The notes beneath the pieces are model-generated. The model saw only the letters and a program-made list of their open reading frames with translations, made no database searches and was not told the origin of the DNA. A stretch of DNA of 63,975 bases, counting the filler, from Klebsormidium nitens (lineage: Eukaryota; Plantae; Klebsormidiophyceae): assembly GCA_000708835.1 (NCBI GenBank). It is 6 parts of 6 records of this genome, joined end to end, with 100 filler letters (N's around TTAATTAATTAA, not from the genome) between each part and the next. Parts side by side here need not be neighbours in the genome. Positions count along the whole stretch, not along the records: positions 17,261 to 48,629 come from DF237760.1; 5 more parts are not named here. The stretch is one strand, 5' to 3'. This document shows positions 17,261 through 47,913 of this stretch, in pieces (the first letter of the stretch is position 1; the number at the start of each line of letters is the position of its first letter). A program made the position numbers and the translations under genes.

Positions 17261-17333
17261 TGCGAACGCCCCCATACGCGCGCGGACAATATACTGGGAC
17301 GAGTTCGATATGAAGATTCATAGACTCGAATCG

Positions 17334-21500: not shown

Positions 21501-24500
21501 GCTCCGCTTAAAGACTGTAAAATCATTCAAAGCTTCGCCGCTTGAAGGCCATGTCTTCAACCAGGGACCGGATGCAAGACCATTCAAGTGGCGTCCCGGG
21601 ACTACCAGCTGAGTGCAAGATTTTGCGAAGGTAGCGCGTACGACGGTTGGAAGGGACCGGAGTTAAGGGAAGCGGATTCAGGAACCCAACTTGGTGGCGA
21701 AATTGAGGGCAACACATTGATTAAATTAAACGCCGCCTGGTTCTGCTTGATCTCTTACTCACAGCAGTTTGCCTTGATTCTAGCAGCAACACATACGCTC
21801 AATAAATTTCAGTTTAGCGACAGAACATGTCAGACAAAGTTTAAAAGGCGCTCTTCCAAGCCGGGGGCCTCACCGATGAGCAGCTGCGCCTCCCCCTGCT
21901 TCAGCAGCTTCTGCGCCTCTGTGTGCTCCACGATCGCGCTCATCGCCGCGTCGCGCTCGCGCCGAAGCAGCTGCAAAAGGACCACGCGCGCGAAACGTCA
22001 GCGAGTGGTAACGTGGCGGCCGTGTGCGGCCGAGCTTAGTCTCGTGAAAAGGTGGTGATACTCTTCAATTATCACATGAGTTCGAGACTACTCTTTCAAT
22101 GAAAGTGTTATTCAAGCCAACCTTGATCGCGCGCAATTGGCAAGTTCCAAAGGCAATCTGCACAATCTACAGTGGAAAGGTATCTACAAATCGAAACTAA
22201 GCGCTTTATCCCCAAAGCCTTACTGTCTTCCATGATTACCAATCCGTCGCAGCTTTTTGTACAGCTTCAACTGGGGTATGCAAAGCTGGGCAATCCTCCT
22301 CCTCTAGTTGACAGCACGCGTCTGGCCTGACTTCTGAATACGTCAGCACCGGCAAACGCGTTCCGGCCGAAGATCATGTTTCGTCACCCGCCACCTCACC
22401 TCCAGCAGTTCGTCCCGCTCTTTGGTCACGCCCGCGAGGTCCGCCGCGAGCCGCGCGTTTTCCTCGCGCAGCGCGTGTTCCTCGCGGCCGGCCGCCTCTA
22501 AACCCGTCTTGGCCTCCAGAAACTGCGCGGTCAGCTGGCGCACCATCGCGTTGTAAACGCTGTGTTGCTCCGCCAGGCTGGCCTCGCTCTGCGCACGAGA
22601 CGAGCAGGTGACGTCAGCGAAGAGGGACTGGCGTCAGCACACAGAGATGATTCCAAAAATTGCGCGGTCAGCTGGCGCACCATCGCGCTGTACACGCTGT
22701 GCTGCTTCGCGAGCTAGCTTCGCTCTGCGCGTGCGACGACGTGGTAATGTCAGAAAGTGCGTGGATACGTGAACAAACTGAGGCGACGTGTCTTTCTCGT
22801 TTGCAACGCGCTCCAGAAAACCACGCAGTGTGCATCGCCAATCCACCGAGCCCTCGCCTCCCTTGTGTGCAGTAGAACTGGTGACGTGAGCCAGAGATAC
22901 TTTTCAGAGAGACGATTTTCGTTTCCGCGATTGTCCCTGAGCTTCCGCGTTTCCAATGCTCTTGTTTACTTTTCCCTTCAGCAAGGGACAGTCTCTGAAA
23001 GCCTCCTTAATGAATGAAGGTCTGCAGAACGTCAGAGCACACTAGAACGGTCAACCATGACGGCGACGTCTCACCTCTTGCAATCGCCTTTTGGTCGCCT
23101 GCAGCTCCTGATAGAAGTGCTGCACTTGTTCCCGGCTTGCTTCGACCTCCTGGAAAGAGAAGAAGGTACTGTGTGTAAGTGCTTCGCGGACCGCAATTGT
23201 TTTTCGGACTGCTTTCAAGAACGTCTTGGCACCACAAATACTCTGATATGGTTTCCTGACTGCCGAAAATTCAATGGTACTGGAAATGGACTCCAGACTC
23301 CACTCTATTTCCAATTTCCAGAACCGATGCCTATGTCGGAAGTAGGAAGAAATTCCACGCTGGTGAGCTTGATCCTACTGCTTTCTCTCATATTCTCTTC
23401 TGCATGCATTCAAGAGCACAGAATCCAACTAATCTTCGAAGCGACATGACCTGCTCTGTTTGCGAGCAAGTCCGCAAAATGATATTAGCGACTCTCAACG
23501 AACGCGTGTCCACGAGAAGAAGACTGAGCGCTGTCAAGCCGTACCTCTGTCAGAGTTGCCGCCATGTCCGCGTCGCACTTGCGGTCCCGCCCGCCGTACG
23601 TCCAGAAGCGCGTCCCGGACGCTTCCTGCGGACGCTTCGACGGCGAGACGTGAGAGCCGCTGGTGGAGGGGTTCCCGGGGCCCCGCTGGGGGGACGGTTG
23701 CCGGACCGCGCTGTACGGCCTACGGGCAAAAAACGATGATCTTGTTAGAAACGGGGCCTTACCAGTTCAGCCAAACGGAGCGATCGCAAAGATGCGCGCG
23801 CTGAACGTTACTTTTAAATACTCTGGCGCATGATTTGATGCTGAACAAAGAGCGTACTGACGCAAAAGACGGTGCATGAGACGGAGCCTCACTTTGTCAA
23901 ATGCAGAATCCAATCTCTGGTACACTTGGACCTTCAGCTCGAAGCCAAAACAACCGGCAGATTGACATTGGCATCTTCTTTGCAATCATGGTACTTTTTT
24001 TGGTGATTGTCCCCGCATCAATTTGGTCGGAGGATCTCGCCTCACGCCTCCAATTACTCACGGGGGATGGTGCCCGGCGGTCGCCACCAGCGCGGCCCCC
24101 CGGGGGCTGTCCTTCCTGTCGCGGGGGCTCGCCAGCGCGCGCGCGTTTCTGGCGCTCCTCAGGGAGTCGCTTGGTGACTCTTGCCGGGCGTCCGCAATGC
24201 GCGCCTCGCGCTCGCGCTCTTTGACCCAGTCGCTAATGACGCTGGTCTTCCGCTGCCCGGTTTTGTCGTCCGTATACTTTAAGGCTTGGCTTGAGATGTG
24301 GGGGAGGTCCGGGGTTTGGAGGTTTCGGAGGGTTTGGCGCGGAGACGTCGCGAGGGCGCCCGCCGGGGCGTGCTCGGTAGAAGAGAGGCCCGTCGTCTCG
24401 GAGATGTACTGCACGAGTTGCAAGTGATAACCGTCTCAGAACGGTAGGAGAAAGAAAAGGGGCTCCCGAGGCGGATTGCCTGGGGGCCCCCCGCCAATAC

Positions 24501-27500
24501 AAACCACTTCGATCGACGGTGAATGTTGGTGATATTGTTCAACCCAGTCCGTCAATCCCGGGGGGGTATTGCTGAATAGGGTCTCTTTCTCGAGAGCTTC
24601 TTTTCTCCCTCCTCTTGTTCTCTCAGGCCCCAGAAGATTCAGTTTTCAGAGTCCTCTGAACCCCTAACTTCCTTGATGTTGAAAACAAAAGATCATAGGC
24701 CAACGCAAAGATTGGCAGATGGGGGCGTCGTCACCTGAGGTTTGTTGGCACACATAAAACGACACCTTTCTTGCGCCAGAATTTTTGCAAGGACTACCAC
24801 AACCATTCTCTCCCGTGTTGAACGTCCGAATGATAAAAAAGTGACGTACCTGCGCCCATTTTGCTGAGTGCACGGCGGTCAGGTAGATTCTTCCCTCCAA
24901 GCCCCGCACGAACTCCGCCACGAACCCCACGAGGCGGTGCCCGTGCGCCTTCTCGACGTAAGTGATCAATGAGCTGGCGGCTGCATACGTCAAGGTGGCG
25001 TCAGATAGGCGTTCTCGAAAGCGATTAAACCCCGCTCTTTAGAGGGGCCGCAAGTTGTAGGATGGTCATATCGAAACGCCTCTCGAGGACAGCACGCGTA
25101 TCATCAGCTTTCCTGCTATATCGAATCTCATCAGCTCGTGCGGGACAAACCTTTTCCAAAAACGGCTTTGCCAATTCATCTGGACTTTTGGTGTTCGCAG
25201 CTAGCAAACCACGTGCCGCTTGACCAACGTGGCGATATGAAAGGCCCTTGATCGAGCTCCACATAAGCTGCTTGCGCTTCCTCTCACCTCTTCGGACGTC
25301 CGTCTTGATACGGACGTCCTGCAACGGCCTGCTCTCCTCCGCGTCTTTCTCGTCGCCCCTAGTTCCTCTTGACCGCGCGCTCAGCGCGCCCTCGTTGGCA
25401 CTCCCAAGGTAACGCCGGCTGTACAACCTGACTGTGGCGTTACATCGAAGACCGTCCCCTTCTTGGACGCATGTCGCGACGAACCTCTGGTCCAGAGATG
25501 GCGGGACGTAGACCTGGAGACGATTGCACAGGTTGAGAGACCGGAATCCCCATACAAAATCGAATGGGGAAGAACAGAACATTGAAAAAAAGTTCTCGCT
25601 TCTTTCCAGGATGTGCGTCGAAGAATGTGAGTGTGAATCTTTGAAGCGACCGCAGTTGTTTGCAGTGACTTTTTCTCGAACACCTTGTTCTCGGAAGTTT
25701 GGAAGGTGGTTTTCGCACGGAAGCAAGACTTGTCTCAACTGGGTCACTGAAAGCAAAGCCTAACCAAGCCTGTACATCACAAATTGAGTGACTCGAACAG
25801 CCTGCAGTTTTCCTCGGCCTAATGTACATGTCTACTGCGCTCCTCTCAAGCTCTCCCAAAGCGCTTTTCTTTTCAGCTTACCTGCAAACAATGCGGACAG
25901 CACAACCCCCCGAAAGCTCCCGGCCCCAACGGCTGCTCCGCTGTGGCCGCTTTCCGCCGGACCTTTCCGTTTCCGTACACCCTCGGACTCCGGACGCCTT
26001 GTTCGGATGGAGAAGGGTCCGAAAGCGAGCACAAGAGCTCGTCCAAATCGTCCTTTCTAAGCAGCTGCGAGATCTCCTGGTCGCCGGGGCCAAGGGATCG
26101 GGCGACGGCGATCCACCCCTCGGGATTGCAGGCGTCCTGAACCAAAGGAGAATCTGAATTGAGCAAGTAGGGTTGGTCGCGTGTTTAGAGGTAGTCAAAC
26201 GTCTATGGTCAGCATTAGCTGGATCGTCGGGGTTTGGAAAGCGAAGCTAATGCATTTCAGACGTCACGCTGCAGCAGGGACCTAAGATTGTACCTCTAAG
26301 CTGTTCGACGGTCACTTTACAAGGAAAGTCTTCTTCCGCAGCGGGCCCACTCAAAACACGTCTTAGGCGTTTTTGAACCTACTAAGTTAGCTCTCCTGAA
26401 TCTGCTAATGTAGCAACTTTACCCGCAGTAGCTGTCCGGATGCAAGCCTTCTATCCAACTGCCGTCTGCGCATGGCAAAGTTGCTCTGTCTTCCATTCCT
26501 GTAATCAACAGTTCCCTTGCATATTGGAGCTTGCTCTTCTTCGTGCTGGTAACGTCTAGCGCTGCAGACCCATAGAAAGAAGGATAGAAACAAAGTGGCT
26601 ACTTAGGTGAGAGCAACTTATAACCACGTACCTCCGTGAACTTCTCCTCGCATCGCTTCCGAAACGCCTCCCTGGTAGCCTTTGAAGTGGCCACTCGGTT
26701 AACGTACCCATCGTCCGAGGTTTGGTACCTGCCGGCCAATCAGCAAGCGTCATGACCTGAGTCGTAAATCTGCTACACTAGGTCCAGTTATCCTGGTGAC
26801 TGCTAGAGAGATGCAAACGGAGTCTCGTTAACGGCATGCTCGAATGCCGAAGCCGTGTTTCGTGACTAGATGGTATTGTCAGAAAAGAAATTCGTGGTGT
26901 GGACCATTAGCTGTGGTTTCACCAGCGAAGTGAAGATGCGCTCTGATGAACTCACAACGCATTGGTGAGCCTCTGTTCGTATGAAGCTGAATATAGACTG
27001 AATCGAGTCTTGCATCCTGCTCAATGTTGACCGCAAAGCGGACGGCTTCGGCTTGATAGCCGAACAGTGTCTGGCAGCATCTTTCGTAAAGCGACACAGC
27101 TTCTTTTTCAACTCTGAGCAATGTAAGCACGCAAGAGGGTTGTATAAGGGAGCTCAAATGAAGAAAAGAGTCGAAGGAGCAGGGTTCGTTTACCAGACGG
27201 TTAGGCAGCCCTGGTCGATGATCAGCGTGTCAGGAATGTTGAGCCGCAGTTTCAAGCCCCTGTCCTGCACAGCACACACCAGCACAGCCTTTCAGACTCT
27301 GTGCTGCTTTGCAATTTTAAATGGTTGAACAGCTTGCATGAGCTGAGTGCCTCTCAGTTCAAACGCCTTCTCTCAGTAATTGCTCCATTGCCTGATTGAC
27401 AGCATGAACGCTAGCTGCACATGCAGGTTATGCTTTCTCACGTCAGAACGTTGAACTGCTCTTTATGAAACATCTACCACCACGTACGTCAGCTAGCACT

Positions 27501-29601
27501 CTCCAGTCGAAGTTTTCGTGAGCAGATTGTTGTGGTAATAAAACAGAAGACTTGAAGATACACAGAGGCTCAATTGGGATGAGCAATGTGCTTCAGATGA
27601 GCGGTGTGCTTCGGAAGGGAGTAAAGAAGGACCGTAAGAAGTGGAGAAAAGTGCTGATTGATCCTAACGCTACAATGCTGTCAAAAACGGACACAGTACG
27701 AGCTTGCTTTCAGAATAAACGAAAGCAAGCCGGAGTCCTTCCAGCATGAGCTCTGCTGTGTTGCACATTCTGCAAGATGACATAAACCCTTTTACTCTCA
27801 TACTGGTTGAGCTGAAACAGGTATGTACTTGTTGCGTCTTGCCAATATGATCAAAGTGGAGCCTCTTTGCCTATGTAATACTCGCCGTCTCCTGCTCTTA
27901 ATGAACAAGGAACACCCCCGGCTGTGTTGCAAATCTTTGACAAGCAACTCACAGCAAGCATTTACTGCATGCTAGAACTCAACTGCTTGCTTTACAGCCC
28001 GATCCCCAAACCTTACACTTCCAACAACGGCAGATCTCAAAGATATTCATCAATGAGGTGCCATCATGAAGCTTTAGGCACAGGAAATGCTCGTTCCGCT
28101 GAGTCAAAACAATTTTGGCTGGCTTCAAAACTGGGACGTACTCTGACTCTAAGCCACCGCATGCAAGCCCTCTTATCAAACCCTTTCTTCAACGCGGTTT
28201 AGCCTCAGCTTACATCTACCGTCAAGCGTCAGCAGCAGAGTTCTGCCGTTAGCAAAAACCTGAAGTTGAACAAAACCCTCTCAATGTGTAGATCAAGTAT
28301 GTTCTGGAGCTGAGCATGTATTGAGATGCTCGTTATAGACGGGGGTGACTTACGCTTACAAAGAGGCGGAAGAGATCAGACCACCAGCCCGCTACAATGT
28401 GGCTGTGACCAGGTCCGATTGGACTGTCGGACACATCCATTGTAACCCGGCATGCCTGCCCAGGGTGTCAATCGTCTTACATGCACTTCCGCCGCATTTT
28501 GGCCCTCATCTATGGTGGACTTCTTGAGCATCACGTCTTTGCCTACCCTGCTTTGCCATTCTTCAGACGGATCAGGCCGGTCCAACACACAGCAAGGCTA
28601 CGCCTGACCCCTCCTGCTCAAGAAGGCGAAAGGTCCCTTGGGGCAGCTTCCAAATGCTCTCACGCATGAGTGCTAGTATTGGAAGGAGACTCCACATCTA
28701 CAGAAAGCCCATTCTGACCTTTCTAGCACTCTCTCTATTCTCTGATACCTTGACATCCCGTAAAGTGCACACGCATGGTGTTGCCATCGGCCAGGCATCC
28801 AATGGGGTTTGCCGGTTTGCAGCCACGTCTGCTGTGAATGGGGATCGTGGTGGCGCGTGCACGGGTGACAGCCTGATTGCGCCCTGCGGTAAAAGTCTTA
28901 TCATTTCTATTTCATTCGGAGTACACTGTACATAGCAACCAGAGGAGAACCAGAGCGCCTCCAGAGCGTCATCAGGTCTGAATTTTGGACTCACCTATAA
29001 AGTCTGTGACATCAGCACCTACACCTGACTTCTGTGCATAATGGATCTCAATCGAGACGCAGAGCTGGTGCTCAGCTGGTGCAGCGGAGGAGTGCAGTGA
29101 AACTGCCGCACTGGCCAGCCTGGCCGGGCGGTACTTTGCAAGGTACTGTGCTGGATCCTGCACGTACTGCGACTGTGCTAACGAATGACGTGGCCCGATG
29201 AACCCACAACTCGAAAGTGGAGCAAACTGGTCCTTCATGTGTATGAGCTGCTCCAGTAGGTAGTACAGCCTGGCAACGTACTTGAAGGGTCTCATGAATG
29301 CACCCTTTAGCTTGTTTAGGTAGAAGCAGATGACATCAGCAGCAGATTGAGAGAAACAGGCTATTGAACCGCAAACTGGAATGCAAAACAGACGGCGCAA
29401 GAAAGGCAGAACCTGCCGTCGGATCCGTGACAATCGTATCGTGGCTGTTGGTATTCCAGACGTCGATTTTCAATGCTACCTTTGTCTGCCGTCCAAGACC
29501 GTCGGTCCAACATCCGGCCGGCCGAAATCTATCTTGTCGTTTCTGCGCTTTTCAAGCTCCTGACGTAAAGCCACGTGGCTATACTGAAGCTCCCGCGCCA
29601 T
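18595..29601 (-). CDS. Very large multi-exon coiled-coil protein with a C-terminal p25alpha/TPPP-like (EF-hand-like) domain; may be two genes
   Basis: First exon 29601-29480 (MARELQYSHVALRQELEKRR...). Coding blocks at about 29300-29030, 28990-28720, 27110-26880, 26560-26420, 26140-25886, 25520-25030, 24990-24850, 24420-24060, 23740-23530, 23152-23077, 22588-22400 (heptad-rich) and 21440-21140. Phase-consistent terminal exons 20618-20471, 19949-19882 and 19525-19379 give LKEIYAFYCMLG...SMTLLQFGKLVRDIGLL...AACDAIFAKV...LTYMEFLEALVRLAAFRY. The 3' end is uncertain. Confidence 0.65.
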
Positions 29602-30134
29602 CTAAGCCGTCCAACCATTCTGGTTGACCTTTCCCTTTTGACTTTCCGTGCACACCGGTTGCGCGACTTCTTGGAAATTCACTCAAAGGCCGTGACAGGT
29701 GGACAAGGTGCATTCTTATGCGACGATCTTTGCAGTGCTCAGATGTTTGCAGTGCTCAGATGTTTGTTGAAGATCGACAAGGCCAGACGCGCTTTCTTGA
29801 AATTCTTCTTCCAGTGCTTCTGGATGTGGTCTTCTTGCTTGATATGAGAATCAAAAACGGCACAAAGGAGGCATCTTGCAAGTTCTCTGAAGGCGGCACA
29901 ACGCTGTTTACAAAAGAGATTTAGGCAGGCTTGTTCTACCTACTTTTCAAACCACTTTACAAGTCTGGGAGCGCTTATTTGTTGCTGTCCTTGGCGCTGC
30001 ATCACTCCACCCTTTTTGTTTCTTTGAAGTTGTGCCCCTGCGGCTGTAGTGAAAGACAGGCGTTGCGCAAGCCCCTGTTGAGGAAAAATAGGAGTAGGAG
30101 ACCGTCAAATGTGGAGTAGCCTCGCAAAGCAAAG
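29602..30134. promoter_or_regulatory. Putative bidirectional promoter / 5' UTR region
   Basis: About 530 bp between two divergent start codons (29601 minus, 30135 plus). Contains a tandem 17-bp duplication, TTTGCAGTGCTCAGATG x2 (29729-29762). Confidence 0.5.
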
Positions 30135-33100
30135 ATGGCTTTCTGTCAAGCTTCCATTGCGTCTGGACTTGCACTTTTCCTGAACCCAAAATCGCTCAGG
30201 CCGTCAATTTGCCGTCCCCTGCCACTACAGTCCACTATATTACCAAAGCATGAGATCTTACCCCCTCAAAGATCGTCACTTCCACTGGTTGGAAAACACT
30301 CTCACCATGGGGTCATTAGAGCAGTGTCTGAACGTTCCAGTCTTGACACTGTCAAATACCCTTTGAACCAAAGGCGACCAGGCAGAGTGAGCAGCGACCC
30401 CATTGCAAAGGCGTTGGAGGTGGTTGCTTCTGGTAGGAGAGGGAGCGGCCTCTCTGACCGGCACAGCAGCGCAAGAGTATCCAAACGAGGCTCCTTTGTG
30501 CTGTCTCGCCTGTATGAAGCCCAAGGCATGCTTTTGGGAGGCCGGTCGAAGGGGAGGGGCTCTGCGAGGTGGAAGACAAGGAAGGGCAAAGTGCAGGCAG
30601 GGAGTGTCTTGGAGGCAAAGAGCTCAAAGACTGCCGGTTTGCAAGGGGTGGACTCGCCATACCTGGCGTTGGACTCTGAGGGGCACCGGTGGACGGCGCC
30701 ACTGAATCTGAAGGAGCCCCCAACTCTAGTTCAGTACATGAAGCAGATTGTGGCTCAGGGGCAGGCGGCACAAGGAGAGACAATCCTCCCAACTAAAATG
30801 GAGGGCCTGATGGGAAGTGTGACTGGCCTGAGCATCGAGCAGCTTTTGACTGATGAGTCTGTCTTCACCCGCGAGCTGAGGTATGCCCCTTGCTTAACTT
30901 TCCGTAGTATCTTTCGCTGTGATCACGTGCTACCTATCTCAGCGAATTGCACGAGCTCTACAAGGCTGCAGACATAGAACAAAGGCAGCACTGAGCTGAG
31001 GGGAAAGTACTGACGGGTTGGTTCTGTCACCTTCTGAGTGATGGGATTTAATGAGCTATTGATTGTTTAGAATGCTTTTTATCATGATGACTAATCGATC
31101 TGAGGAGTTCAGTTTACCTGTACTTATCGAGATAACTTTTTGATTGTCAAGGACACCGCTTCTTTCAGCTCAACTCTCAAGGACATATGCATATGAGGCA
31201 ATTGCGTTTATACTGCAGTTGGCTGTTTTTGAACTGGAGAGTACTCCATGTCGCCATGGACCAGAGAACCCCACTCCACGAGCGCCTCCGCTTTCTTGGA
31301 ATTGCGGCCGCCAGCCTCGATGAGTTCTTTGAGTGCCGAGTTGCCAGCTTGAAGTGGAAGGAAGCGGTCTCTCAAGACGCCAGCGCAAAGCAGGGAACCA
31401 GAGGATGTTGCTCACTGCAAGAACGCCTGAAGAACATCTCTTTGTAAGTCATCAAGGAGTTCAGGTTACGATTGTGCCGAAATGTGGTTTTGAACATCCT
31501 TGACGCATTCTTGTATCTGGTTTTGGTGTTGTCGATTACGAAGAAACAAGATGATGTCCCTTGTGAAGACGTTTTGTTCGATAAAATAAGAACTCTCTTC
31601 AGTCAGCCATGTTCCCTTATCCAACGAATTGCCACTGCCTTTGACAAGGTCAACATAAACAGCTGCCCCAAGACCTGTGTTGTGAAACCACTTGCAGCTG
31701 CAAGTGGCGTCTTTTACGTCCACCTATGACATGTTGCCACTCGATTAGGCATACGACAATGCTGTTTTGGTTGAAAGATCGTTCTATTTCCATAGAACTA
31801 ACGAAGGGCGTTCGTTTATGCAGGGCGGTTCATGACATCCTCTCTGCTCAGTCCACCGCCCTCCGCGGCAGCATCCTTCCCGAGCTCCAAAAGCACGGCG
31901 TCTCCATCGCCTCTCATAGCCAGCTCACCAATCCCCAGCAAGACAACCTCCGTGACTACTTCACACAGGAGCTGGAACCCCTTCTCACCCCCCTCGCAGT
32001 CGATCCAGGCCACCCTTTCCCGTTCATCAAGCACTTGTCCCTCAACATAGCAGTCCTCCTGCGCGACCCGATCGACGACGCGCACCAGTTTGCAATAGTA
32101 ACCGTCCCCTCCAACCTCCCCCGGTGGAAAGCGCTTCCAGGGGGGGCCAGCGCAGACTCACCACAGGCTGGGGCGGTCATCCCCCTGGAAGAGATCGTCG
32201 TGTCCAACCTTGACCGGCTGTTTGGCGGGATGGAGATTCTGTCGGCGCACCCGTTCCGAGCCACCCGCACGATGCTGGTTTTGGACGATCTGAAGAAGGG
32301 GGAAGAGGACCACTGCGGCGCGGACGATCAAGGGGATCTGGCGGCGATCATCGCACAAGAGATGCACGAGCGCAAATTCAGCCCGTTCGTGCGACTCGAG
32401 GTGGACCGCAGCATGCCGCTCGAGATGGTGGCGCGGCTAGCCGGGGAGATGGACCTCGACCTGGAGCAGGTAAATGTTTTGTTCGTTTCATGCCACACCT
32501 TCCTCTTTGACTCTCACTTAGAAAACGCTGCAGCTTGAACTTTGCTGGCGTGCTCTCTTGTGAAAGTCCTAGCTTTGAGCTGGTTCAGTAGGGCGGTCGT
32601 CGCTGTAGGAATGTCGTGTTAATCTTTCTTTCTCCCTCCATCACTCTTAGAGAAGGTAGCTGCTCTGGGCCAGAAAGGGTACTGTGGTCACTGTTCCCAG
32701 ATTTAGCAAAGAGCTGGTGGAGCCGATTTGGGAAAACACTCTGATTCGCAAATCGAGCTGGATCCGTCTGTCTGAAAGTCACCTAATGACGTGTCACGGA
32801 CTCATTTGCCCTTTCAACCGGCAAGATGGACGCTCTTACGCTGCCAAAACACACGCGGCCACAGAAGGTTTTTTGGGCAATTGTTTACTAGGCCACTATC
32901 GGCACTCGGTGCAGAATGTTGTGCTTCTCTCCCTATCACATTCCTACTAGTTTCTACGCTCAAGCAGCCCCTCCCTTTTTGACTCCAGGACGTCTACACC
33001 ACAGAGAGCCCTCTCGCTCTGTGCGACTTGCAATCTCTCCCCGCCCCCACCTCCTCCCCGGCCGCGCTCCACTTCCCCCCTTGGCAGCCAATCACCCACC

Positions 33101-36100
33101 CGCGCCTCGCTGACGTCAGCCGTTCGTCAGCGGCCATTTTCGACGAGATCCGCGGCGGGGGGGACATTCTCGTGAAGCACCCGTACCACAGCTTCGTGAC
33201 CAGCACGCAGGCGTTCTTCGAGGCGGCGGCGCGGGACCCCGCGGTCGTGGCAATCAAGGCGATCCTGTACAAGACGAGCGCCAACAGCCCCGTCGTGCAG
33301 GCGCTCGTGGCGGCCGCCGAGGCGGGAAAGCAGGTGGGTGCGACGCTTATGAAGCAGGGACCATTGCTAGTTCTCAGCAGCTGTGAAAGAATTTGGAGTT
33401 GCACCAGTGTCCGCTAACCGAGAGAACAAGCTGGGAAGGCTGGAAGGCGAGCTGGCTGACGTCATTTGCCTATGTTTGCCTCCGCATCAGCCTGCCATAC
33501 TGTTCACCGCGTTGCTTATATACCTCCTCCACGCAACAAGTCTGCTGGGGTGCCTATCATTGTTTCTTTGTTGGTCTTATTTGTGGTTGTGAAAGGCAGA
33601 AAGGTTTTCGAGTCTGTGAAGGAAGAGTTCCATTTGCATTCGGACATCTTTTCATCACACTCCACAGCTCCGTAAAGTCCTGGCACATGATGGATTCGAC
33701 CATTCTGTAGGTGACGGTTCTGGTCGAGCTGAAGGCCCGCTGCGAGGAGGCCCGCAACATCAACATCGCGGAAATGCTGGAAGACGCGGGCTGCAACGTG
33801 GCCTACGGTCTGGTCGGCCTCACGACGCACGCCAAAGCCAGCATGGTGGTCCGGCAAGAAGGGTCCGAGCACAACACGTACGTCCACGTGGGGACCGGGG
33901 ACTACAACGTCCGCCAGGCTGCGGCATACTCTGACGTCAGCCTCTTCAGGTTAGGACCCCGGTGGTAATGAGAGACAGGTAAACTTTTTCAAGTGTACAA
34001 CGCTTGTTATTGCATCTGTTTTTGAACCATGAATTGACCAGAACCTGATCTATCTTCCAACCAATAAGATAGATGCATTTGGCAAACTCCTCGGTCGACG
34101 CGCTCCTCAGCTCCATGTGTCAAACCCCGTCACCTCTGCCCGTAGCCGACACGTACTCCTCATGAGGTTCTAGTTTTTGACTTACTCAGAAACCGCTCCG
34201 TCTATAGAGCAGCCATTCTAAGCAAGCGACTTAGCTGTATGATCCGGCATTAACCAGCTCAGTTGTTTAACCCGGCAATAACAAGGTCCGTTATTTAACC
34301 GCATTTTCTCCCCGCTGCTGCAGCTGCGACCCGGAGCTGGGCCGCGACGTGTCCGACTTCTTCAAGTACCTGACAGGGTACCACCGCCAGAAGCGGTACC
34401 ACTCGCTGCTGATCGCGCCGCACAGCATGCACCAGCAGCTGATCCGCCTGTGCGACACCGAGATCGAGAATGCGCGCAAGGGCCTCCCGGCGGGGATCAC
34501 CATCAAGTGCAACGCGCTGGACGATCGGGTAAGGAGCTGAATCTAAAAGCAGGGAGACGGCGTCTCCTCACGTGGCTCTGCACACGCAGCCTGTGAGATG
34601 GTACTAGTGCGTGACCGTGTGCATTAGTGGGCGATTGCTAGAGCCAGAGCCTCAGCTAATACGTTTGCTTAGTAGGACCGGTTCTCCCGCCCTCTTCAAA
34701 GCCCTAATGGCAGATATGACGGACAGTCCAGTGGCCGCTGGGCGTTCTGCAGGCAGACGTCGGGTCTGCTTTGAAGGGGCCGCGTCTGGCAGGCTTGCCT
34801 GTTGCAACGTATAGTGGAGTTTGATGTTTCCGAAGAGATGGCGTCTGATTGGGCATTGATCGGGGCTAGTGTGGACGCGTTTATCGTTGTGAACTTCATG
34901 AAGGAAAAGAGATTCTCCTTACGGCGATGGAAGATTGCCAAAACGTTGTCGCTGAGCAAACCCTTCTTTTGCAGGTCCTGTGCGCGAGATTGTACGCAGC
35001 ATCGGCTGCTGGGGTGAAGGTCAACCTCATCGTGCAAGGCATCTGCCGGATCCGGCCCGGCGTTCCTGGAATCAGGTGACTGATTAGTTCACACCCAATA
35101 GGAAAAGCACAATCCATCTAGCCTGCAGTAGGGACGCGTATCTTCCGAGCTCTCAAAATACACGAGGTTCAACAGAGTCCTCACTGTGCTCGCTCGCCCT
35201 CTCGGCAATCTGGAACTTCTCTCAAGAAAGTTGACGCACTCTTGGTTGCTTGCGCGCATCTCGCTGGAGTTCGTTCTAGTTTCACACCCTTCCCGATCAC
35301 TTTACTTGCTTCGACCATCCGGCGCGTTGCGTGCATTTTGCTTGTTTTCGCGATCATTTTTCTTACATGGAACATCGTGGGACTCCCTGGAGCACAGTCG
35401 CGTGAAGCGTTGCGAGTTCTGGGGCGACCACGCTTGCGTTTGTTATCATTCCCAGTCGCGCACTTGCTATTTATAGTACTTGCTCCCCCCCTGCAGTGAA
35501 AATATTCGAGTTGTAAGCATCGTGGGCCGTTTCTTGGAGCACAGCCGCGTGATGCGCTTCGAGAACGGCGGCGACCCGCGATTCTACCTCTCCTCCGGGA
35601 ACTGCACCACCCGGGACCTCACGCGCCGCGTCGAGCTGGCGCTGCTCGTCAAGGACGACAAGTGCAAACAGGAGCTACAGGTACGGCTGTGAAAAGGCTC
35701 GGTATTTCTCTTTCTGATATATACCGTGTTTATGGTTATGAAGATATTAATCAGGACGGCAATTGCAGTCAGGAGCTGCAGGTACCGCCGCAAACAGTGT
35801 TCGTATCCGCAATCTTTTGTTAAGCCGTGCCTACAGTCTTGAAGATATTGTCGAAGGATGACAAGTGCGAACAAGGGCTGCACTTACGGCTTGGAAACGT
35901 TTCTGTATTTGTGCTTGTCCTTGTTGGCCGAGCTCATAGTCATCAAAGGTCGCGATGAAGATCTGCGAATGCTTTTGAATAATATCAGGAGCGTCTGGGG
36001 TCCCGCCTTGATGTCATTTCCGTCAGGTTCAAACGTGGCTAGTTAAAGTGCTTCGCTATGCTGGCTTTCGTCCATTCGGGGTTCTATCTCAAGTAGGCGG

Positions 36101-36518
36101 TCTTTCGACAACAGCAGTCTCTTCTTTCCCTCGGATACTAGATCCAAAGCCGTTGCCATCTTAACGGGCACCCTTTTGTCGCCGTTTTCAGATGCTTTAG
36201 TTCCGCAATTTCTTTCCTGTAAACGGCGTGTTCTCCATCAGCTTATCCGATGTGTATCGTCCGCAGGACGTTTTGGACCTCTGCTTGAGCGACCGCCGCA
36301 CCGCCTGGGAGATGCGCCCCGACGGTCTGTACAGTCTGCCCGCGCCTAGTAACGACACGACCGGTAGTCATGCAACCGGGACGAGAGACGCCCGCCTGGC
36401 CGCGATTGGGCTGCAAGCCGCGCTGATGGAGGACCTTCTGAAAGAGCGGGAAAAGGCCAGGAAAGTCGAGAAGTTGAAGATCAAGGCCACCGCGGGGGGC
36501 AAAAGGGATAGAGTTTAG
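30135..36518 (+). CDS. ppk1: Polyphosphate kinase 1 homolog (bacterial type), probable plastid transit peptide, divergent active site; 9 exons
   Basis: Phase-consistent exons: 30135-30880, 31219-31443, 31824-32469, 32989-33333, 33711-33949, 34324-34528, 34975-35075, 35497-35680, 36267-36518. Motifs: [26 protein letters not shown]...[65 protein letters not shown]. Confidence 0.93.
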
Positions 36519-37985
36519 TGGTTGAAGTATTGTTTATGGAGAGCACGTGGTAAATAGATGGATGATAGATAGATAGAGCGCGAGGTGCGGTGCAAGTGTA
36601 CAGCTTAATAACGCCATTGCGAAACCGTAGCTTGACATTGCCGATAGAAGTTAGCCTAGTCAAAGAGGGGCGACTGTGTCGGTTTACACAATTGCTTGAG
36701 CGTGTCTGTATGATGATTGTTCCGAGACTTCGTAGGAGTCTTCTACAACTGCTCGAGTAGGCCAGCTAGGCAGGTTGTAGTCGAGGCGCTGGTAGGATAG
36801 GGTTAGCATTTGAATCCGAAAAGGGGGGGGGAATTGTGTGGCATCAAGAGAGCTAGAACCTAGTCAGGGTAGATAGATACAGATTCGATATCATGTTCTT
36901 GAACATTGCTTGAGACCAACAAACTTCCAGACCTTGTGTTTATACTTGCTGACTTCAAACCAACTGAACCAAATTCAAGTCAGCGATTCTGCATGCTGGA
37001 CAATATGGTACACCATATCCGAAATCTACCGGTGTGAGTACGTCCGCCACCAAAATGCTGGCCGGGCTAGGTCAGTATTCAAGGCCACATATGGCGCGCT
37101 TGGCTCTGGCAGGCTAATGTTGAAGATCAAGTTGTTGGTCCAGGTTTATATATGATCATGGCTGCGCGCGGCGGTCGCGCTCTTTAGCCGCGCCCGGCCT
37201 ATCTGCTGGTGATTACGCGTAAAGCTTGATCTAGTCAGGAGTCAAATGGTACAGAATGACGTATGCGTCCAACTCATGGGTGGCCAGCTAAGCCATGGCA
37301 CGTGTGGCATGCCATGGCGTACCTAGTTCATTGCTGACTCGATGATGGGCTGCCGCTAAGGCCTTAAGCCCAAATGTGCAAGCTATCATGATCGACCCAT
37401 GGATCGACCCGGCCTTGAGTTCGCGAGGATAGTCACTTACAAATTGGTGATAAGACCCCATGTCACACATGTGAAACCGCTGCCGCCACATGTTTCTCAA
37501 GACATCTTCAGCAAGACGTGCATGTATATAAGCAGGCTCGATTAGCTTTCACTGCGGGAGGCTGAGCCATGGTAATCCGCAATGCAGTGTGAATGACGCG
37601 TTTGCCCAGCCGGTGGCTTATCGGTGGTTGTCGGCCCTCATGCTAGGCCGCTGTGGCCGAATTTAGGCCAAGCCCCACGATGGGCCTTTGGCACTGGTCA
37701 ACTCACAAGCATATTGCATCTATGAAGATCGGTCAAGTGCATACCAGTACCTCGCAAGCCCGAATCTGATCTGCTTTGTCCCTTCCCGGGAAGTGAATGA
37801 TTGAAGGTGACAGAGGGCAAGCAGCACCCTGTTTGCCTGATTAGACGCTTCAGGAAATCCTTCTGAATCATCACCGCACTCTCGTGACATAATCATAGAA
37901 TAACTCACCACTTAAAAGCAAAAAGGCTTCGACTAAAGAGCCCTGTCCAAGTACCGGCTGCAGAGGAGAAGTTTCTAGGCTGTCC

Positions 37986-39407
37986 CTACTTGAAGAGCGA
38001 CTTGAGCACCGAGAATGCAGCTCCTCCCCCCAGGACGATGGCAACTGCAATTGCCAGCCCAGGAGAGGGCGTCTCTAAGCCCGCCAACTGCAAAGATTGA
38101 AACAGATAAAATTCAGAAGAGCAGATAAGTCGTCAGTGCTTTAGGTTGGGGTTCCGCTGTGCTTATGCTTACTAGTGTAAAGTAAGAGCGTGAAATCCGC
38201 AAACATCATATGCCTCGGTATGTCCAGCTTTGCGGAAGCATCATCATATCTCTTATGACGAGTAGAAGGGACGGGTCACTCAAAGCCTCACCGCAAAAAC
38301 CCCCTTGCCTGCTACGATTTCGGTTGTCAGGACCGCCGTGAATGCTAACATAGCCGCCCGACCCAACCACACGTCAGCACCGGAAGCATTGGTTGACTGT
38401 GCATCGGGCTCAGCCATGCACCGAACACTCCGTCGAGTCGGAGCGGACACCGTCCGAGTCAAAGCGCTAGGAGAAACTGCAAGTAAATGAACGTGAACGG
38501 TCATGTCATATGGGCGTTGCGCCACTACGAAAGCATGTTGGGATTAGCTTTTGCTGTAGTTTGTGACACTCCAAGCTTTGCCGCCCTCTGGCGTCTACTC
38601 TGCGCTATATGTTCAGTCTAGTGGCAGCAAACAAGGGGTCGGTGTGCCTTTAGGCTGCCAGATGGAAAAGGCAAGGCCGGTTCTGAGCAAAGTAAAGCAA
38701 GTTCTGTGCACATTAGCGCCCCTTTTTGAGTGTGGGTGCCCTTCTGAAAGAAACACAGTACATCTCTGCTTAAACAGACTGCCACTTCACATATCTTTGA
38801 GGGAAAACTCGACTAAGGGAACTGCACTGGTCAAAACCATTTGGCAGGGGCCACGGTATGACCTTGTGCTTCAAACGAAAGCCGTTGTTTTGGGACAAGT
38901 TCACGAGATTCCCACATGGGGGTTTTGAATACGTGCACCCTGTGTGCTGCGCCTCACCTAGAGGAGCCCCAGAAACGAAGGTTGACCGGATGAGTGGCGA
39001 CTTGCTTTTTTGTAGGTGGCTTCTTACACCCGCTCGCTGGCTTCGATGCCCTTGGAGCTGGCAGACTACGGTGCGCTTGGAGCTCCTTGCTGCCGAATCA
39101 ATCGATTGCAGGGCTGCAACAGGAGATAATGCAAGTCTGAAGACCAAAGAATGTAGCAGTCTAAAAGACAGACGTGTCCAACGATGCTGACAATGCAAAA
39201 GTTGGCTCAGAAAAGGCAGGAGTGGAAGAAGCGAACCGCTCTTTGTGACTGAGCTCAAGTGCAAAGCATTCCAGCATTGAATGTAGAGGAACGAGAAGCT
39301 CGCTCAACCTCCAAAACGGTCCACCTCGGGATCAAAAGCAAGCCTTTTTCTATGTTTGCACCTGAGCATTGCAATGCCGCCTGCTGCGCAACTGCCGAAG
39401 CCGCCAT
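37986..39407 (-). CDS. SEP1: Stress-enhanced protein 1 (two-helix light-harvesting-like protein)
   Basis: Exons 39407-39362, 38476-38292 and 38087-37986. Product MAASAVAQQAALQCSVSPSAL...RCMAE...DVWLGRAAMLAFTAVLTTEIVAGKGVFALAGLETPSPGLAIAVAIVLGGGAAFSVLKSLFK*. The DxWLGRxAM variant of the chlorophyll-binding motif plus a second helix matches SEP1. Confidence 0.85.
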
Positions 39408-40145
39408 GGCTGGTGCTTTGCGTCCGTTCCAACTTCTCGCTTTCTCTTCAAAATGTGGCCTGATATCACCTGTTCTGAACACAATCCACCTCAGAGTCAC
39501 AGACTCTGCGACTGTGACAGGCGGCTGACAAAAGCCTTTGGAGCTGTGCAAATGCACCCGCTAGTTACCTATCTAGTAGGCCCTAGGCACCCGCTAGGTA
39601 TCCTACCTACCTAGTAGGCCAGCCTGAGCATTGCAGCCTGCAGGAGCTTTCTTCTCGTGGCGCTGTTCGGATATTGCAGTAAAATTGGAGTCCTACCGGT
39701 GCCATCATGAAGACCAGTGTTTACAATTCTATGATTCTAGTCATTCTAAAAACATGAACACCAATTCTACATTCCTGCCCAGAGCAGACACATTAAAGCG
39801 GCCCTATACCTGGATCTACAACGTGACCTCCAAATGTGCATGATGATGGGACGGTGAACCCTCTGCATGGTCAGGGATCAGACGTCTGCATTCTCGACGA
39901 CCAAAATCGCGTTCACAAACTGGAATCTGCATGCATTTGGCACCTTTTTCAGTGAGGGAGGACAGAGAGCAGCTGCAAGAAGGAAGGGCAGGGAAAGATT
40001 TTAGCTGGTTAGGCCGTATCAAGCGGCAATTGGTTGCATGTCGCAAAGTTGATGTTCCAATTCTCGGATCGCTGTCCAATGTGAATCTGCGTGAGTTCTC
40101 AAGCTCATTCTCCATGCGTGCGGGTAGTCTGCGCCTGAACTCACG

Positions 40146-43100
40146 ATGAGGCCACCCAACTTCTCCTTCGCTAGGTTTAGATCTGCATTGGCTGCTCTAC
40201 AGCAACCGCTTCTGTCAAATGTACGCAAAGCGGCTGCAGAGCCCGGGGCAAAACTCCAGGAAGCAGGGACTAGATTCCAGAATGGCCGTGACTTCTTTAG
40301 ATCAAGGACCCCCTACCTATTGGCGTTGGCAGCTAGCGGCGGCCTGGGGGGGTTGTGCATGGCCCTGGCAGATGCCCCCCAGAAGAGCTCACCAGTTGAG
40401 GGCACAGTCCAACAGGCGCAGGAGCAAGCGGAGAAGAGCGAGGACCGCAAGAAGAGGGTGGTCATCCTGGGCAGCGGGTGGGGGGCTACTGCAGTGATGC
40501 AGGTCAGGACATGCACCTTTTGTCATCTGGTCCGTTTTTCTCAGATCTTTCTGTATGTTGATTCTGAAAAGCATTTTTCCCGCTGCCATACCTGCGCTCA
40601 TCACATAAAACACACTCGGTGATTTACAGAAATAGTACTGGCGACAAGATGCAATAGCTTGTGAAGACATCCTGTCTCTCTGTCATCTAGGAAAAGTGCC
40701 GACGGCTGACCCAGGGACCTATGTTTCTAGGGAAAGTGTTCACTCTCACCGATTATATCTGTCTGATTTCCTACTGGTTAATTTGCGCAGTACTTCGTCT
40801 TGTCAATTGTAAGAGTCCCCCCAAGTATTCCTGCAGTCTTTCAATTGAGAGGGCCACATTTCTTCCGACGCTTGTGGACAGCATTCTCTGACATATCGTC
40901 ATGTCTTGTAGGGACTTGATACGAGCCTCTATGAGGTGAGTTTTTAACACATGAAGTGGAGGTCGAAGCACGCTACTTTCCTGGATTGGAATCTCTTCGA
41001 GACCTTTATGAGATCTGGGTCCTCAAGTTTGTCATATGTCATGCACAGAATTCTCAACTTTGTGCTTCGTATGTCGCAAATGTTTCCACCATCTTACTGT
41101 AGTTCTGAGGCAACGGGGATCTATGATTCTTGAGTTCCCCATCAATGCTGGCCGGAAATCAGATTACACCGGCACCGTTATTTGAGGACAATTCAAAATA
41201 TCCATGAACTTCCACTCAGTGAGGCTGGCTATTGTCTCGACAGACCATCATCGTATCCCCCCGCAACTACTTCCTGTTCACTCCGCTGCTTCCAGGAGTT
41301 TGTGTCGGGTGAGTGCCGCAACTCGCTTTTATGCTCTTTCGAATTTTGAGGAATGATGTAGAAGGTTTGGCATGCAGAAGCGGGGGGGGAGGTGCAACAG
41401 GCCAGAAGAGTTGCATCCGTCAATTCTAGCTTTTGTCCAATGTCACTTTTTTCACCTTAAAGATCTGGCATAAATCAGCTAGGTTGCTCATCGTATTTCT
41501 GGCTGTTCCTGATGCGTTGTTGAACATCTGGCAGAACGGTGGAAGGCCGGAGCATCTCTGAAGCGGTTCGCAAGATGATCGTGAATGTAAGTAACTGCCC
41601 TTCAGAGGCAATCTAAAGGCTTCTTTTGAGTCTGGTGTTCTCATTTGAGACATCTTGACCGCAACTGTACTACTTGCCCTCTGAGGCGACGGAAGGGGGC
41701 TGCATCAATAGCAAGCGAGGCTCGCAAGCAAACTTGCAAGACAAAGGAGATCGTATCATGCTTTGATAATACTTCTGACCGCCTTTCCCATGCGGCAGCC
41801 TCCAGAAAGTATCGCCTGGCATTATTCTTTCAGACCACCCCCGTTTGCATGGAAAACCTGTCAGTAATTTCGGCCCACTTCTACATATCGAGCAACAGAT
41901 CATCCTGCCAGTGAAAGAAACTTCACCCGCATCCTGATAACAAACATTCGTCGAATCACTGAAGAAGTCACGCAGTCTTCATGGACGCAAACAACGGTCA
42001 ATGAACTCATGCATATTCAGTTCAGTTGAAACGGTCGATGAACTCATGCATATTCAGTTCAGTTGAAGGAACTTCGGACTTTATGGCTGATTGTCCTCTA
42101 ATCAGATGCGGTCAGGATAAGACCCCCAATTCGACCACTGTAATATCAGTGAAAAAGATGTAGTGATGCGGTCCTTAACCCTCCTCACTAACCCGATTTG
42201 TGTAGGCTAAAAGCTCGGCAAAGTACCAAGAAGCAGAGGCTATCAGCATCGACCCAAAGAATCAGCAGGTGCTTTGCAAGGTAAGCGCTTCTCTGCTCAT
42301 CACCTAAGACATTATCAAAGCCTTCACTTGTGGGTGCTCTTGTATCTGTAGAAGAAAAAAGGACGGCTGTAGGTTGACTCAAGAGCGTGGCCGAAACCTT
42401 TTTACAATACAGGCCGTTTGCTTCGTCTTTTTCAATACGATTGACGTGAGAAGCACCCTTGGAAATGTCAATGTTCCTCGAACCTCTAGTACAATTCAAG
42501 CGAGGTGGTCTCCTTGAAATTGCTGCATGATCAGAGACTGCATACTGGCACAGACGAGGTTTTCAGCATGCGGATAGACGTCTCATTTGAGCATATAAGA
42601 TTCCTTCAGGGGTTTCTAAAATATTACATAATATCATGCAGGACACGTCCGCAATCAGCGTCACCGGCAAGGACTCTTTCGCACTAGACTACGATTATCT
42701 GGTCGTGGCGGTGGGGGCCGAGACCAACACGTTTGGAACGCCGGGTGTGAAGGAGCACGCATACTTTCTCAAGGTGGGGAGTCTCGGGCCACCCATCTCC
42801 AAGATGGGTCCTGTGGGCCGTTTCAACCGCACATGTTTGAGATACATTAGATTAGAGCACGTTATTTTCGGCGTTGACCACTGACCCCACATCTGGGCAG
42901 TTGTTTGCATTGCATTGGAAGCAGACCGGTTTTCTCGCGTAAGCTGCCCGATTCTGTGCAGGTGTCGCCCTTGTTACAAACATTGACAACGCTGACGGAT
43001 CGTGGAAAAGTAATAGTATCCTTTCCCGCAAGAACCGGTTCGTAGTTCCTTCCCCACACTTTAAGGTCGCGTAAAGAACGAACGACTCGAACTGCGAAGA

Positions 43101-46100: not shown

Positions 46101-47913
46101 GCTGACGTCATGAAAGCGCTTTGAAGCTTTCCAAGAGTGCTTTTGGAGTCGGCATTCTTGGAATATAGATTGTTTGAAAAATGGAAGACTCGGCAGTCTT
46201 GGACAAAAAAGTCAGCCATGCGGGCTGCAAAGAAATCAATGGTCATCTCTTGCAGTTTACACCTTGGCTGCTGGCAGGGTTTCGCCGTTTTTAAATACCT
46301 TACCTTACTCGATCTCCCTTCTTCAGTAAGCCAGCGGTTCTAGTATCTTCAAAATTGTCCGCAGTTCAGGTTCACTACGTAGCAGCAAACCGTATTACGT
46401 CTGTAACCCCGCCGTCCAGGCGTCGTCCAGGGTTAGCCTCCTCAGTAGAATTGTACCGCAATCTACTTCCATTTATTGCTCATTCAATTCTTGTGATATC
46501 TGCCAGGTGGCGTCACAGGAGGGCACGTACCTGGCCAAGGCACTGAACCACATGGCCGAGCGGAACATTGTACCGGAAGGACCAATGCGGATAAGGGGCG
46601 AGGGGCGCCACTTGTGCCACCCGTTCAGGTGCGCGGACCGTCCCGTTTTGACTGCTCCCCTCCGCTTCGACAGTTCCGTTCCGTTTCCACAGCTCCGTGT
46701 ACTCCGCTGCCGAAAGTATCTCCAAAGTGGTCCAGAAACGACCAGTGGAAAAGTCGGAACCAAGACGATCAAAAACGTATGATATCACATATGATGTAAT
46801 AACTGCTCCTCCAAAGCCACCCCGGTTTGGATTTTCTGGTCAGACCATTGAAGTGAGTTATTGGCGTGTTTTAAATGATAAGGGGCGGCAGTGTCTGATT
46901 GGCCTGAGGTTTGGCGTTCACTCACAGAGTCGTGGTCTCGATCTTCCAGAAGTTCAAGGTAGAGTCGTTCGTCCAGTCGTAGAACGTTGACGTCCAAGAA
47001 CGCGCCCGTCGTGAATCTCTGTGGCCGTTGGGTTGCTTGAGAACCAGGTACGTCGAGGGCAGATGTCACCAAGCTTGGTAGAAGAGCCTGCTATCAGGTA
47101 CAGACACCCAACAAACCTGTTAATTCCTTTCCTGCTCAGGTACAAGCACTTCGGGCAGTTCACGACACTGGGCGGCGGGGAGGCGTCCGTGGAGCTGCCC
47201 GGGGACTGGGTCAGCTCCGGGCGGAGCACCATGTGGCTCTGGTACTCGGTGTACGCGAGGTGAGCCCTGACGTCATCCTGGCAGTTTCGTGACGTCTACG
47301 TTTTCAGGCGTATTGGGTTCACCTGACCTGGGGTAGCTTTGGTAGTCGGCCGGTGTGCACATGTGGGAGCTGACGAGTCGTATGATGCTTTTTCGATGAC
47401 GTCTTCAGTATTGTGCCACATGTGCACCATGGCAATTGCATACGGGCTTTGCCCTTATTGGTGACAGAAGTACCCGGCGATGTGACGAAAGAATCTGACA
47501 GCTCATTTCAAAAGACGGTTTCAGCCGCTTCGTTATTCTGGATCGAGTCGGTTGGGCTGGACGCATTGGTGGGTTGAAGCTCCTCGAGCCTGCACCTTTG
47601 CCGGAAGTGTGCACATGGGTGTTAATGACTGTAAGTTCGAGTAGCAAATTGCCTAGGATGCTATATATGGAAACGAAAGCAGCTTCCCGGAGGTTAGGAT
47701 GGCACATCGGTCTTCTCAAGTCGCAGCTCTCGTAGGCCCGCCAGCAGTTCAATGTCTGAGATGCCTTTTTGACGCACCTTTTGAAATCTGCTCAATTTGA
47801 CGTTTTACTTGTTCCTTGGCTGCAGCAAACAAGTGAGTTGGCGTACCCGTTGCCTGGTCGTCATGGATTGGATGAAGGCGGCATTATTTGGTCGAGACTC
47901 GAGCAGAATGTAA
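40146..47913 (+). CDS. NDB: Mitochondrial external alternative (type II) NAD(P)H:ubiquinone oxidoreductase B with EF-hand; 14 exons
   Basis: Phase-consistent exons: 40146-40501, 40912-40935, 41244-41308, 41535-41586, 42206-42280, 42642-42773, 43130-43380, 43890-43934, 44230-44509, 45041-45148, 45733-45882, 46507-46628, 47140-47259, 47826-47913. Motifs: [54 protein letters not shown]-hand [49 protein letters not shown]. Confidence 0.96.
41993..42066. repeat. Near-perfect 37-bp tandem duplication in an NDB intron
   Basis: AACGGTC(A/G)ATGAACTCATGCATATTCAGTTCAGTTGA x2, one mismatch. Confidence 0.95.

Follow-up and report, generated by a model that had tools for sequence, protein, structure and literature searches.

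Polyphosphate kinase 1 (PPK1) is the textbook bacterial synthase of polyphosphate (polyP) and a drug target, and the residues of its pocket are treated as invariant. Bacterial-type PPK1 proteins have been described in Viridiplantae, including Physcomitrium patens (Q2MEV6 / XP_024403299), Mesostigma viride, Netrium digitus, Spirogloea and Closterium (Whitehead et al. 2013, PMC3680246). These proteins, 973–980 residues long, share one four-domain architecture, a long eukaryote-specific N-terminal extension and spliceosomal introns. Other eukaryotic PPK1s, such as that of Cyanidioschyzon merolae, are PPK1-Nudix fusions, also of bacterial origin and thought to be active in algal polyP accumulation (cited in PMC12526157). 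Here we describe a PPK1 gene from Klebsormidium nitens (assembly GCA_000708835.1), carried by a stretch of 63,975 nucleotides (nt), hereafter the window. The encoded protein, 980 residues long, has the architecture, extension and introns of the Viridiplantae PPK1s and retains the phospho-His core, but residues of the nucleotide and phosphate pocket that the Viridiplantae proteins keep (N45, R375, F406, D407, K433, N459, T464, R564, D612 and N617) are replaced in K. nitens and its close relatives. We found no description of such a variant in the published literature, in which known eukaryotic reports concern canonical proteins or Nudix fusions (PMC3680246, PMC12526157).

The roles of several of these positions are known from Mycobacterium tuberculosis PPK1, which was mutated on the guidance of the Escherichia coli structure (Mittal et al. 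2011, PMC3215733). The mutants R431A, R461A, N515A, R624A and R654A, which affect contacts with the ATP phosphates, lose only the synthesis of nucleoside triphosphates (NTPs) from polyP (PMC3215733). By offset arithmetic, these residues correspond to R375, R405, N459, R564 and R594 of the E. coli protein, the numbering of which is used throughout. In contrast, both activities are lost in Y524A, S668A and E681A, which correspond to the ribose contact Y468 and to S610 and E623, the residues positioning the phospho-His (PMC3215733). Docking on structure 1XDP assigns W14, F17, E48, R53, R375, R405, D407, N459, N461, Y468 and H592 to the ATP pocket (PMC7301697).

The K. nitens gene spans window positions 30135–36518 on the + strand, within the part derived from DF237760.1 (17,261–48,629). 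The coding sequence consists of nine exons separated by eight GT-AG introns, and totals 2943 nt, corresponding to 980 residues and a TAG stop codon. Exon phases are consistent; four codons are interrupted by introns and specify S, L, S and S. The initial annotation had placed nine exons at 31219–35680; nine is the correct number for the whole coding sequence and both limits are true exon boundaries, but the span itself holds seven exons. Exon-by-exon hmmscan searches identified, above gathering scores, the four PPK1 domains in the order PP_kinase_N (PF13089), PP_kinase (PF02503), PP_kinase_C_1 (PF17941, two matches) and PP_kinase_C (PF13090, three matches), which is the N – head – C1 – C2 architecture of the family. 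No Nudix domain was detected by hmmscan in any exon translation, in which respect the protein differs from the eukaryotic PPK1-Nudix fusions.

Structure and motif comparisons lead to the same assignment. The C1 exon has PDB matches to PPK1 structures (1xdo/1xdp, 2o8r, 9uuh, 9urj and 9uri). E. coli PPK1 (from NC_000913) matched six stretches of the gene by tblastn and nothing elsewhere in the DF237760.1 piece. The exons align to E. coli residues 1–74, 333–403, 395–474, 473–543, 545–576 and 573–635, with about 29% identity in the N and head domains and 42% in C1 and C2, and the K. nitens protein has, in addition, the N-terminal extension and a basic C-terminal tail. The H-x-K motif of C1 is found as THAK, followed by YVHVG, in exon 5, where H435, K437 and H454 align, and the second PLD-like motif is found as LEHSR, LSS and RRVE in exon 8 (H592, R594, S610 and E623). 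Identity to the Viridiplantae PPK1s rises to 48–51% in the N and head domains and 59–62% in C1 and C2. Moss genes contain 21–22 introns, compared with eight in the K. nitens clade. As judged from these sequence comparisons, a functional nuclear gene encoding a bacterial-type PPK1 of the green-lineage (Viridiplantae) group is the best explanation for the locus.

Each exon was aligned singly to a profile anchored on the E. coli protein. The changes are F17L, N45S, R375K, F406C, D407E, K433T, N459D, T464Q, R564Q, A611G, D612N, W613C, M614T and N617D. Residues kept in the N domain and C1 are W14, I41, E48, R53, S380, R405, H435, K437, H454, N461, Y468, D470 and F488; those kept in the remainder of C1 and C2 are P507, H592, R594, S610, R616, R621, E623 and Q674. 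The motifs quoted by the initial annotation all occur on the + strand at the places given: ASLDEF in exon 2, LYKT in exon 4, KARCEE, GLTTHAK and GTGDY in exon 5, KCNAL in exon 6, IVQGIC in exon 7, and LEHSR together with a 15-residue stretch in exon 8. The phospho-His, the second His, the YxD motif and the Glu of RRVE are indeed conserved (H435, H454, H592, Y468, D470 and E623), and the substitutions at adenine- and phosphate-binding positions are real and, when set against 76 representative PPK1s (see below), concentrated on the nucleotide and phosphate pocket. Two other changes had been overrated: the columns of KMNSL, here KCNAL, are variable, the canonical Netrium protein also having a Cys (KCNGL), and column 613 varies between W, L and M.

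Among the five ATP-phosphate contacts, R405 and R594 are kept and R375, N459 and R564 are changed; in the adenine pocket of the N domain, both F17 and N45 are changed. Compared with E. coli PPK1, in which the catalytic residues, including H435, H454 and H592, are the same, the pocket residues replaced are F17, N45, R375, D407, K433, N459, T464, R564, D612 and N617. Two exchanges are Asn-to-Asp (N459D in C1 and N617D in C2) and one is Asp-to-Asn (D612N in C2). The initial annotation took reciprocal swaps between the two C domains to be compensatory, a reading that was not established. Two positively charged residues (K433 and R564) are lost and a third is weakened (R375K), while two carboxylates are gained (N459D and N617D) and one is lost (D612N). 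N459D and N617D are located 24 and 25 residues past the His residues of the two PLD-like halves, a similar spacing from which we infer that the two positions are probably pseudo-symmetric. A profile-profile alignment of C1 with C2 matched one strand-helix segment only, with a probability of 19.5%, and did not confirm the equivalence of N459 and N617.

The rarity of these changes was assessed on a broad sample. We collected 150 full-length PPK1s with two queries, exon 3 (exhaustive search) and the Netrium protein (word search), a choice independent of the motifs, and supplemented them with 80 PPK1 genes of GTDB species spanning many phyla and with E. coli PPK1. The 233 rows included 221 genuine PPK1s, which were reduced to 76 bacterial, archaeal and eukaryotic representatives at <70% mutual identity. 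R375, D407, K433 and R564 are found in 76/76 representatives, N459, T464, D612 and N617 in 75/76, N45 and F17 in 71/76, F406 in 69/76 and M614 in 67/76. The DNA patterns used to retrieve the 80 GTDB loci contained ARFD and GTGN, and columns 406, 407 and 459 are therefore judged on the 150 motif-independent proteins alone, which have F406 in 145/150, D407 in 150/150 and N459 in 149/150; K433 is present in 150/150 of the same proteins. The changes at R375, D407, K433, N459, T464, R564, D612 and N617 thus fall in eight columns conserved in 75–76 of the 76 representatives. Moreover, 23 further metagenome loci matching exon 5 are all canonical over the parts covered. A count with looser thresholds (90% and 97%), made on mostly Netrium-like proteins, was dropped, as E. 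coli PPK1 itself deviated there at 17–68 columns.

At least 98% conservation is observed in 52 columns. The K. nitens protein, with its clade, deviates at eight of them and is the top outlier, whereas the other representatives show a median of 0 deviations and a maximum of 6, the latter in a truncated protein. Since no other representative reaches eight of 52, the changes are more than chance or ordinary divergence would be expected to produce. These figures bear on whether the protein could be a functionally ordinary PPK1, in which drift along a long stem branch fixed tolerated variants of little effect. Overall divergence is moderate, as the K. nitens protein is 55–62% identical to canonical green PPK1s in C1 and C2 and these are 61–82% identical among themselves, and the stem branch of its clade (0.87 in the head-domain tree) does not exceed those of Mesostigma or prasinophytes in length. 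In addition, M. tuberculosis PPK1 continues to synthesize polyP when three of the positions are individually mutated to Ala. However, the absence of a general acceleration also indicates that the changes are focused on the pocket and not scattered across the protein, and neutrality is unlikely at columns that do not vary across the 76 bacterial, archaeal and eukaryotic representatives. E. coli PPK1, more distant overall, deviates at only 4 of the 52 columns, none of which is a known pocket residue. Given that the M. tuberculosis mutants lose the reverse reaction, some functional change is to be expected, and we consider an ordinary PPK1 unlikely.

The K. nitens gene belongs to a rare clade. 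An exhaustive search with exon 3 yielded one cluster at 81% identity and no further match above 50%, and exon 5 added one fragment. Four related loci group with the K. nitens gene: L002 and L003, both recovered from a single JGI metagenome; L110, which derives from an ENA metagenome; and L004, a Logan contig covering exon 3 only. The first three cover the whole gene with an identical exon structure; exons are 67–93% identical to those of K. nitens at the nucleotide level, while introns are mostly unalignable. The clade has a support of 99/100 in the tree built from the head-domain exon, where it is placed among green-lineage PPK1s, outside a bacterial and archaeal clade supported at 100/98. 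The nearest named relatives are Mesostigma, Netrium, Closterium, Spirogloea, Physcomitrium and Ceratodon, and the closest canonical ones (streptophyte algae and mosses, such as Mesostigma, Netrium, Physcomitrium and Spirogloea) retain every canonical residue. No second, canonical PPK1 was found in the DF237760.1 piece or on the orthologous contigs L002, L003 and L110.

N45S, R375K, F406C, D407E, K433T, N459D, T464Q, D612N, W613C, M614T and N617D are common to L002, L003 and L110, with synonymous codon differences among the orthologues at C406, E407 and T433. In contrast, R564Q and A611G are restricted to K. nitens and L110. Because L002 and L003 retain Arg at 564 (CGC, compared with CAA in K. 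nitens), R564Q is a later step; thus IVQGIC, listed by the initial annotation among the rewired motifs, is present in K. nitens but is not part of the set common to the clade. Ratios of non-synonymous to synonymous substitution rates (dN/dS), calculated by the Nei-Gojobori method, are 0.14 for K. nitens against L002 (dS 0.82), 0.13 against L003 (dS 0.86) and 0.08 against L110 (dS 0.32), the last value indicating that constraint remained strong after R564Q. Exon 5 is the most constrained exon, with a dN/dS of 0.048 against L002 when taken alone (dS 0.58).

The gene is also expressed. RNA contigs from four public runs, which belong to four studies and carry two organism labels, were compared with window positions 30650–36600. 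Spliced PPK1 contigs of 2.8–3.8 kilobases (kb) were obtained in three runs, and the fourth run has the same joints in short contigs. All eight splice joints are common to the four runs, with zero letter differences between RNA and window; the locus is therefore transcribed. The claim that the altered motifs do not reflect decay was thus borne out, since the gene is spliced and expressed, dN/dS ranges from 0.08 to 0.14, and the derived residues are kept in three full-length orthologues despite synonymous differences. Nothing but the unusual residues themselves would suggest a decaying pseudogene, a bacterial contaminant or an assembly artefact, and we regard any of these as barely credible. A decaying pseudogene was rejected on the basis of 981 intact codons (stop included), eight GT-AG introns, spliced transcripts from four studies and the dN/dS values; the same gene structure recurs in the three independent full-length contigs; and a bacterial contaminant is excluded by the spliceosomal introns and the eukaryote-type N-terminal extension.

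Within the classes defined in M. tuberculosis, the K. nitens protein changes three residues of the class affecting only NTP synthesis and none of the class in which both activities are lost. The three alanine mutants R431A, N515A and R624A (PMC3215733), altered at the positions of R375, N459 and R564, are the best functional analogue. They are single laboratory replacements, however, whereas K. nitens has Lys, Asp and Gln at these positions, together with five more changes, all fixed by natural selection. As the catalytic histidine machinery is kept, the gene probably encodes an enzyme with altered properties and is not a dead gene. The reading we favour, to which we give an even chance, is that of an active phospho-His transferase whose nucleotide handling, metal use or reverse reaction is altered; it draws on sequence conservation and on the analogy with the M. 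tuberculosis mutants, which lose only the conversion of polyP to ATP.

The initial annotation had proposed either a pseudo-kinase or a changed specificity; altered properties are favoured, and a pseudo-kinase was not established. A pseudo-enzyme would keep the fold and the polyP or nucleotide binding surface for a non-catalytic role, such as sensing polyP, acting as a scaffold or regulating a different polyP enzyme, and would have lost phosphotransfer. All eight changes at columns conserved in 75–76 of 76 representatives lie around the triphosphate site and move the pocket towards negative charge, and purifying selection would be equally expected for a non-catalytic function. By contrast, the residues of the phospho-His step are all intact (H435, K437, H454, Y468, S610, E623, H592 and R594), although loss of the nucleophile or its partners is usual in pseudo-enzymes. 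Constraint is strongest on the exon that carries H435, several of the exchanges are conservative (R to K, D to E and N to D), and the M. tuberculosis mutants make polyP. A pseudo-enzyme is unlikely.

Several points nevertheless weigh against an active transferase with altered behaviour. Some pseudo-enzymes also conserve the catalytic His. Zhu et al. reportedly found in 2005 that N45, here a Ser, bonds adenine in E. coli PPK1, and Tzeng and Kornberg reportedly observed in 2000 that polyP synthesis is lost in E. coli R375 and R564 mutants. The net charge of the pocket is shifted, as positive charges are lost by K433T and R564Q and negative charges are gained by N459D and N617D, with one unit recovered by D612N; binding of the polyanionic substrate would therefore be weaker unless a metal compensates. 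Finally, mutating R375, Y468 and R564 had different consequences in E. coli PPK1 (PMC3215733), reportedly more severe ones at R375 and R564, and the effect of the substitutions may therefore be stronger than the M. tuberculosis data suggest.

The history of the gene and, if the protein is an active transferase, its mode of action may be outlined as follows. The pocket was remodelled on the stem of the rare clade, both in the N domain (F17L/M and N45S) and at polar or charged residues of the triphosphate site (R375K, D407E, K433T, N459D, T464Q, D612N and N617D), with R564Q added later, and the new residue states were then fixed by purifying selection. Autophosphorylation of His435 and transfer of phosphate to polyP would be retained, as suggested by the integrity of H435/K437, H454, Y468, S610, E623 and H592/R594 and by the extreme constraint on exon 5. 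The nucleotide would be handled differently, perhaps with a relaxed or shifted base preference. Since positive groups in the pocket are reduced and acidic ones increased, dependence on divalent metals could be stronger. The reverse reaction, comprising ATP formation from polyP and ADP along with nucleoside diphosphate kinase activity, would probably be weakened, which would make the protein a more one-way polyP synthase.

A bolder version, which we put forward tentatively and think somewhat unlikely, is that a streptophyte-type algal lineage has turned the PPK1 fold to a new specificity. N459D and N617D, along with the loss or weakening of K433, R375 and R564, might create an extra metal site, and the protein might use another phosphoryl donor or acceptor or act as a strictly one-way organellar polyP synthase. 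If so, the forward and reverse PPK1 reactions would have been separated in nature. More generally, a natural variant that rewrites eight pocket residues around a conserved phospho-His core could reveal the contacts on which nucleotide choice, metal use and reversibility depend, and it bears on the route of polyP synthesis, by a bacterial-type PPK1 or by VTC, in green algae close to the origin of land plants. A one-way enzyme or one of altered specificity might be of use in polyP production or in ATP-regeneration biocatalysis, whereas, if inactive, the protein would represent the first PPK1 pseudo-enzyme documented to be maintained by selection.

The N-terminal extension encoded by exon 1 may indicate where the protein acts. 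Its translation contains no Pfam domain and no Nudix domain according to hmmscan. Orthologues share the start site in this exon, and similarity begins only at a 12-residue stretch further on. The first 65 residues contain 2% D+E, 11% R+K, 15% S+T and 12% P, and the segment looks like a putative organellar transit peptide. By this composition, the K. nitens protein is probably imported into an organelle. The coordinates of all exons are reported below.

Exons of the K. nitens PPK1 gene (window coordinates; residues in E. coli numbering)
Exon	Position	Strand	Content	Changed residues	Kept residues	Support
1 (A)	30135..30880	+	start codon, 248-residue N-terminal extension			open reading frame; RNA joint 30878/31217 (cut +2)
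2 (B)	31219..31443	+	PP_kinase_N, PF13089 E = 2.3e-18	F17L, N45S (codon AGC 31313-31315)		RNA joints
3 (C)	31824..32469	+	N-domain end and head (middle) domain, PF02503 E = 2e-42			RNA joints
4 (D)	32989..33333	+	linker and first part of C1, PF17941 E = 5.7e-19	R375K (AAG 33271-33273)	S380	
5 (E)	33711..33949	+	C1 core, PF17941 E = 4.2e-28	F406C (33741), D407E (33744), K433T (33822), N459D (33900), T464Q (33915)	R405, phospho-His H435 (33828-33830), K437, H454, N461, Y468, D470	aligns to PDB 1xdo
6 (F)	34324..34528	+	C1 end and C2 start, PF13090 E = 2.8e-9; holds KCNAL		F488, P507	
7 (G)	34975..35075	+	C2	R564Q (CAA 35035-35037)		in spliced RNA contigs of four runs
8 (H)	35497..35680	+	C2 core, PF13090 E = 1.2e-21	A611G, D612N (35600), W613C, M614T, N617D (35615)	H592 (35540-35542), R594, S610, R616, R621, E623	
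9 (I)	36267..36518	+	C-terminal part of C2, basic tail; stop TAG 36516-36518		Q674	

In the flanks of the gene (17261–30000 and 36600–48629), the ten longest open stretches gave no Pfam match. The transcript contig of one run (X11) reaches 947 nt upstream of position 30650, and the 5' untranslated region is therefore at least ~430 nt long, or extra non-coding exons are present upstream. Within exon 3, the head-domain motif FRVTRNAD reads FRATRTML, with some 10 extra residues inserted after it. FRVTRNAD with EEEAEDLLEMI after it is kept in at least 90% of relatives, and the insertion is common to the orthologues.

In L110, the closest relative, exon 3 (1581–2224) shows an apparent frameshift, the other exons being intact with 88–100% protein identity. 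As the assembly is only 3x long-read, the frameshift is probably a sequencing error. A sister sample of the metagenome behind L002 and L003 contains a canonical PPK1 gene (L111, 1000–14000) with many more introns and a GC content of 51%, on a eukaryotic contig of 44.8 kb. Its motifs are RNLDEF, LYRT, KARFDE, GLKTHCK, GTGNYN, IVRGIC and GSADWMTRNL. The gene shares two intron positions with that of K. nitens, one before a 10-residue stretch and one after KxELQ, and is no nearer to the latter than other canonical genes are. L111 may be a canonical paralogue from the same algal group, or a gene of another streptophyte.

Intron 7 (35076–35496) is represented in all four runs by a separate unspliced contig, covering either 35046–35523 or 35076–35517, at about one fifth to one half of the depth of the spliced contigs. 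A sizeable share of transcripts may retain the intron, in which case the C2 domain would be truncated; alternatively, these contigs may represent pre-mRNA or DNA. A unit of ~101 nt occurs in three tandem copies at 35651–35910, such that two further copies of the terminal 30 nt of exon 8, with its 5' splice site, lie within intron 8. Copy 2 retains a donor-like CAG/GTACC sequence (the slash marking the splice position) and copy 3 reads CAC/TTACGG, and RNA joints are found at the first site only. L110 carries a partial additional copy of exon 8 immediately upstream of its own exon 8.

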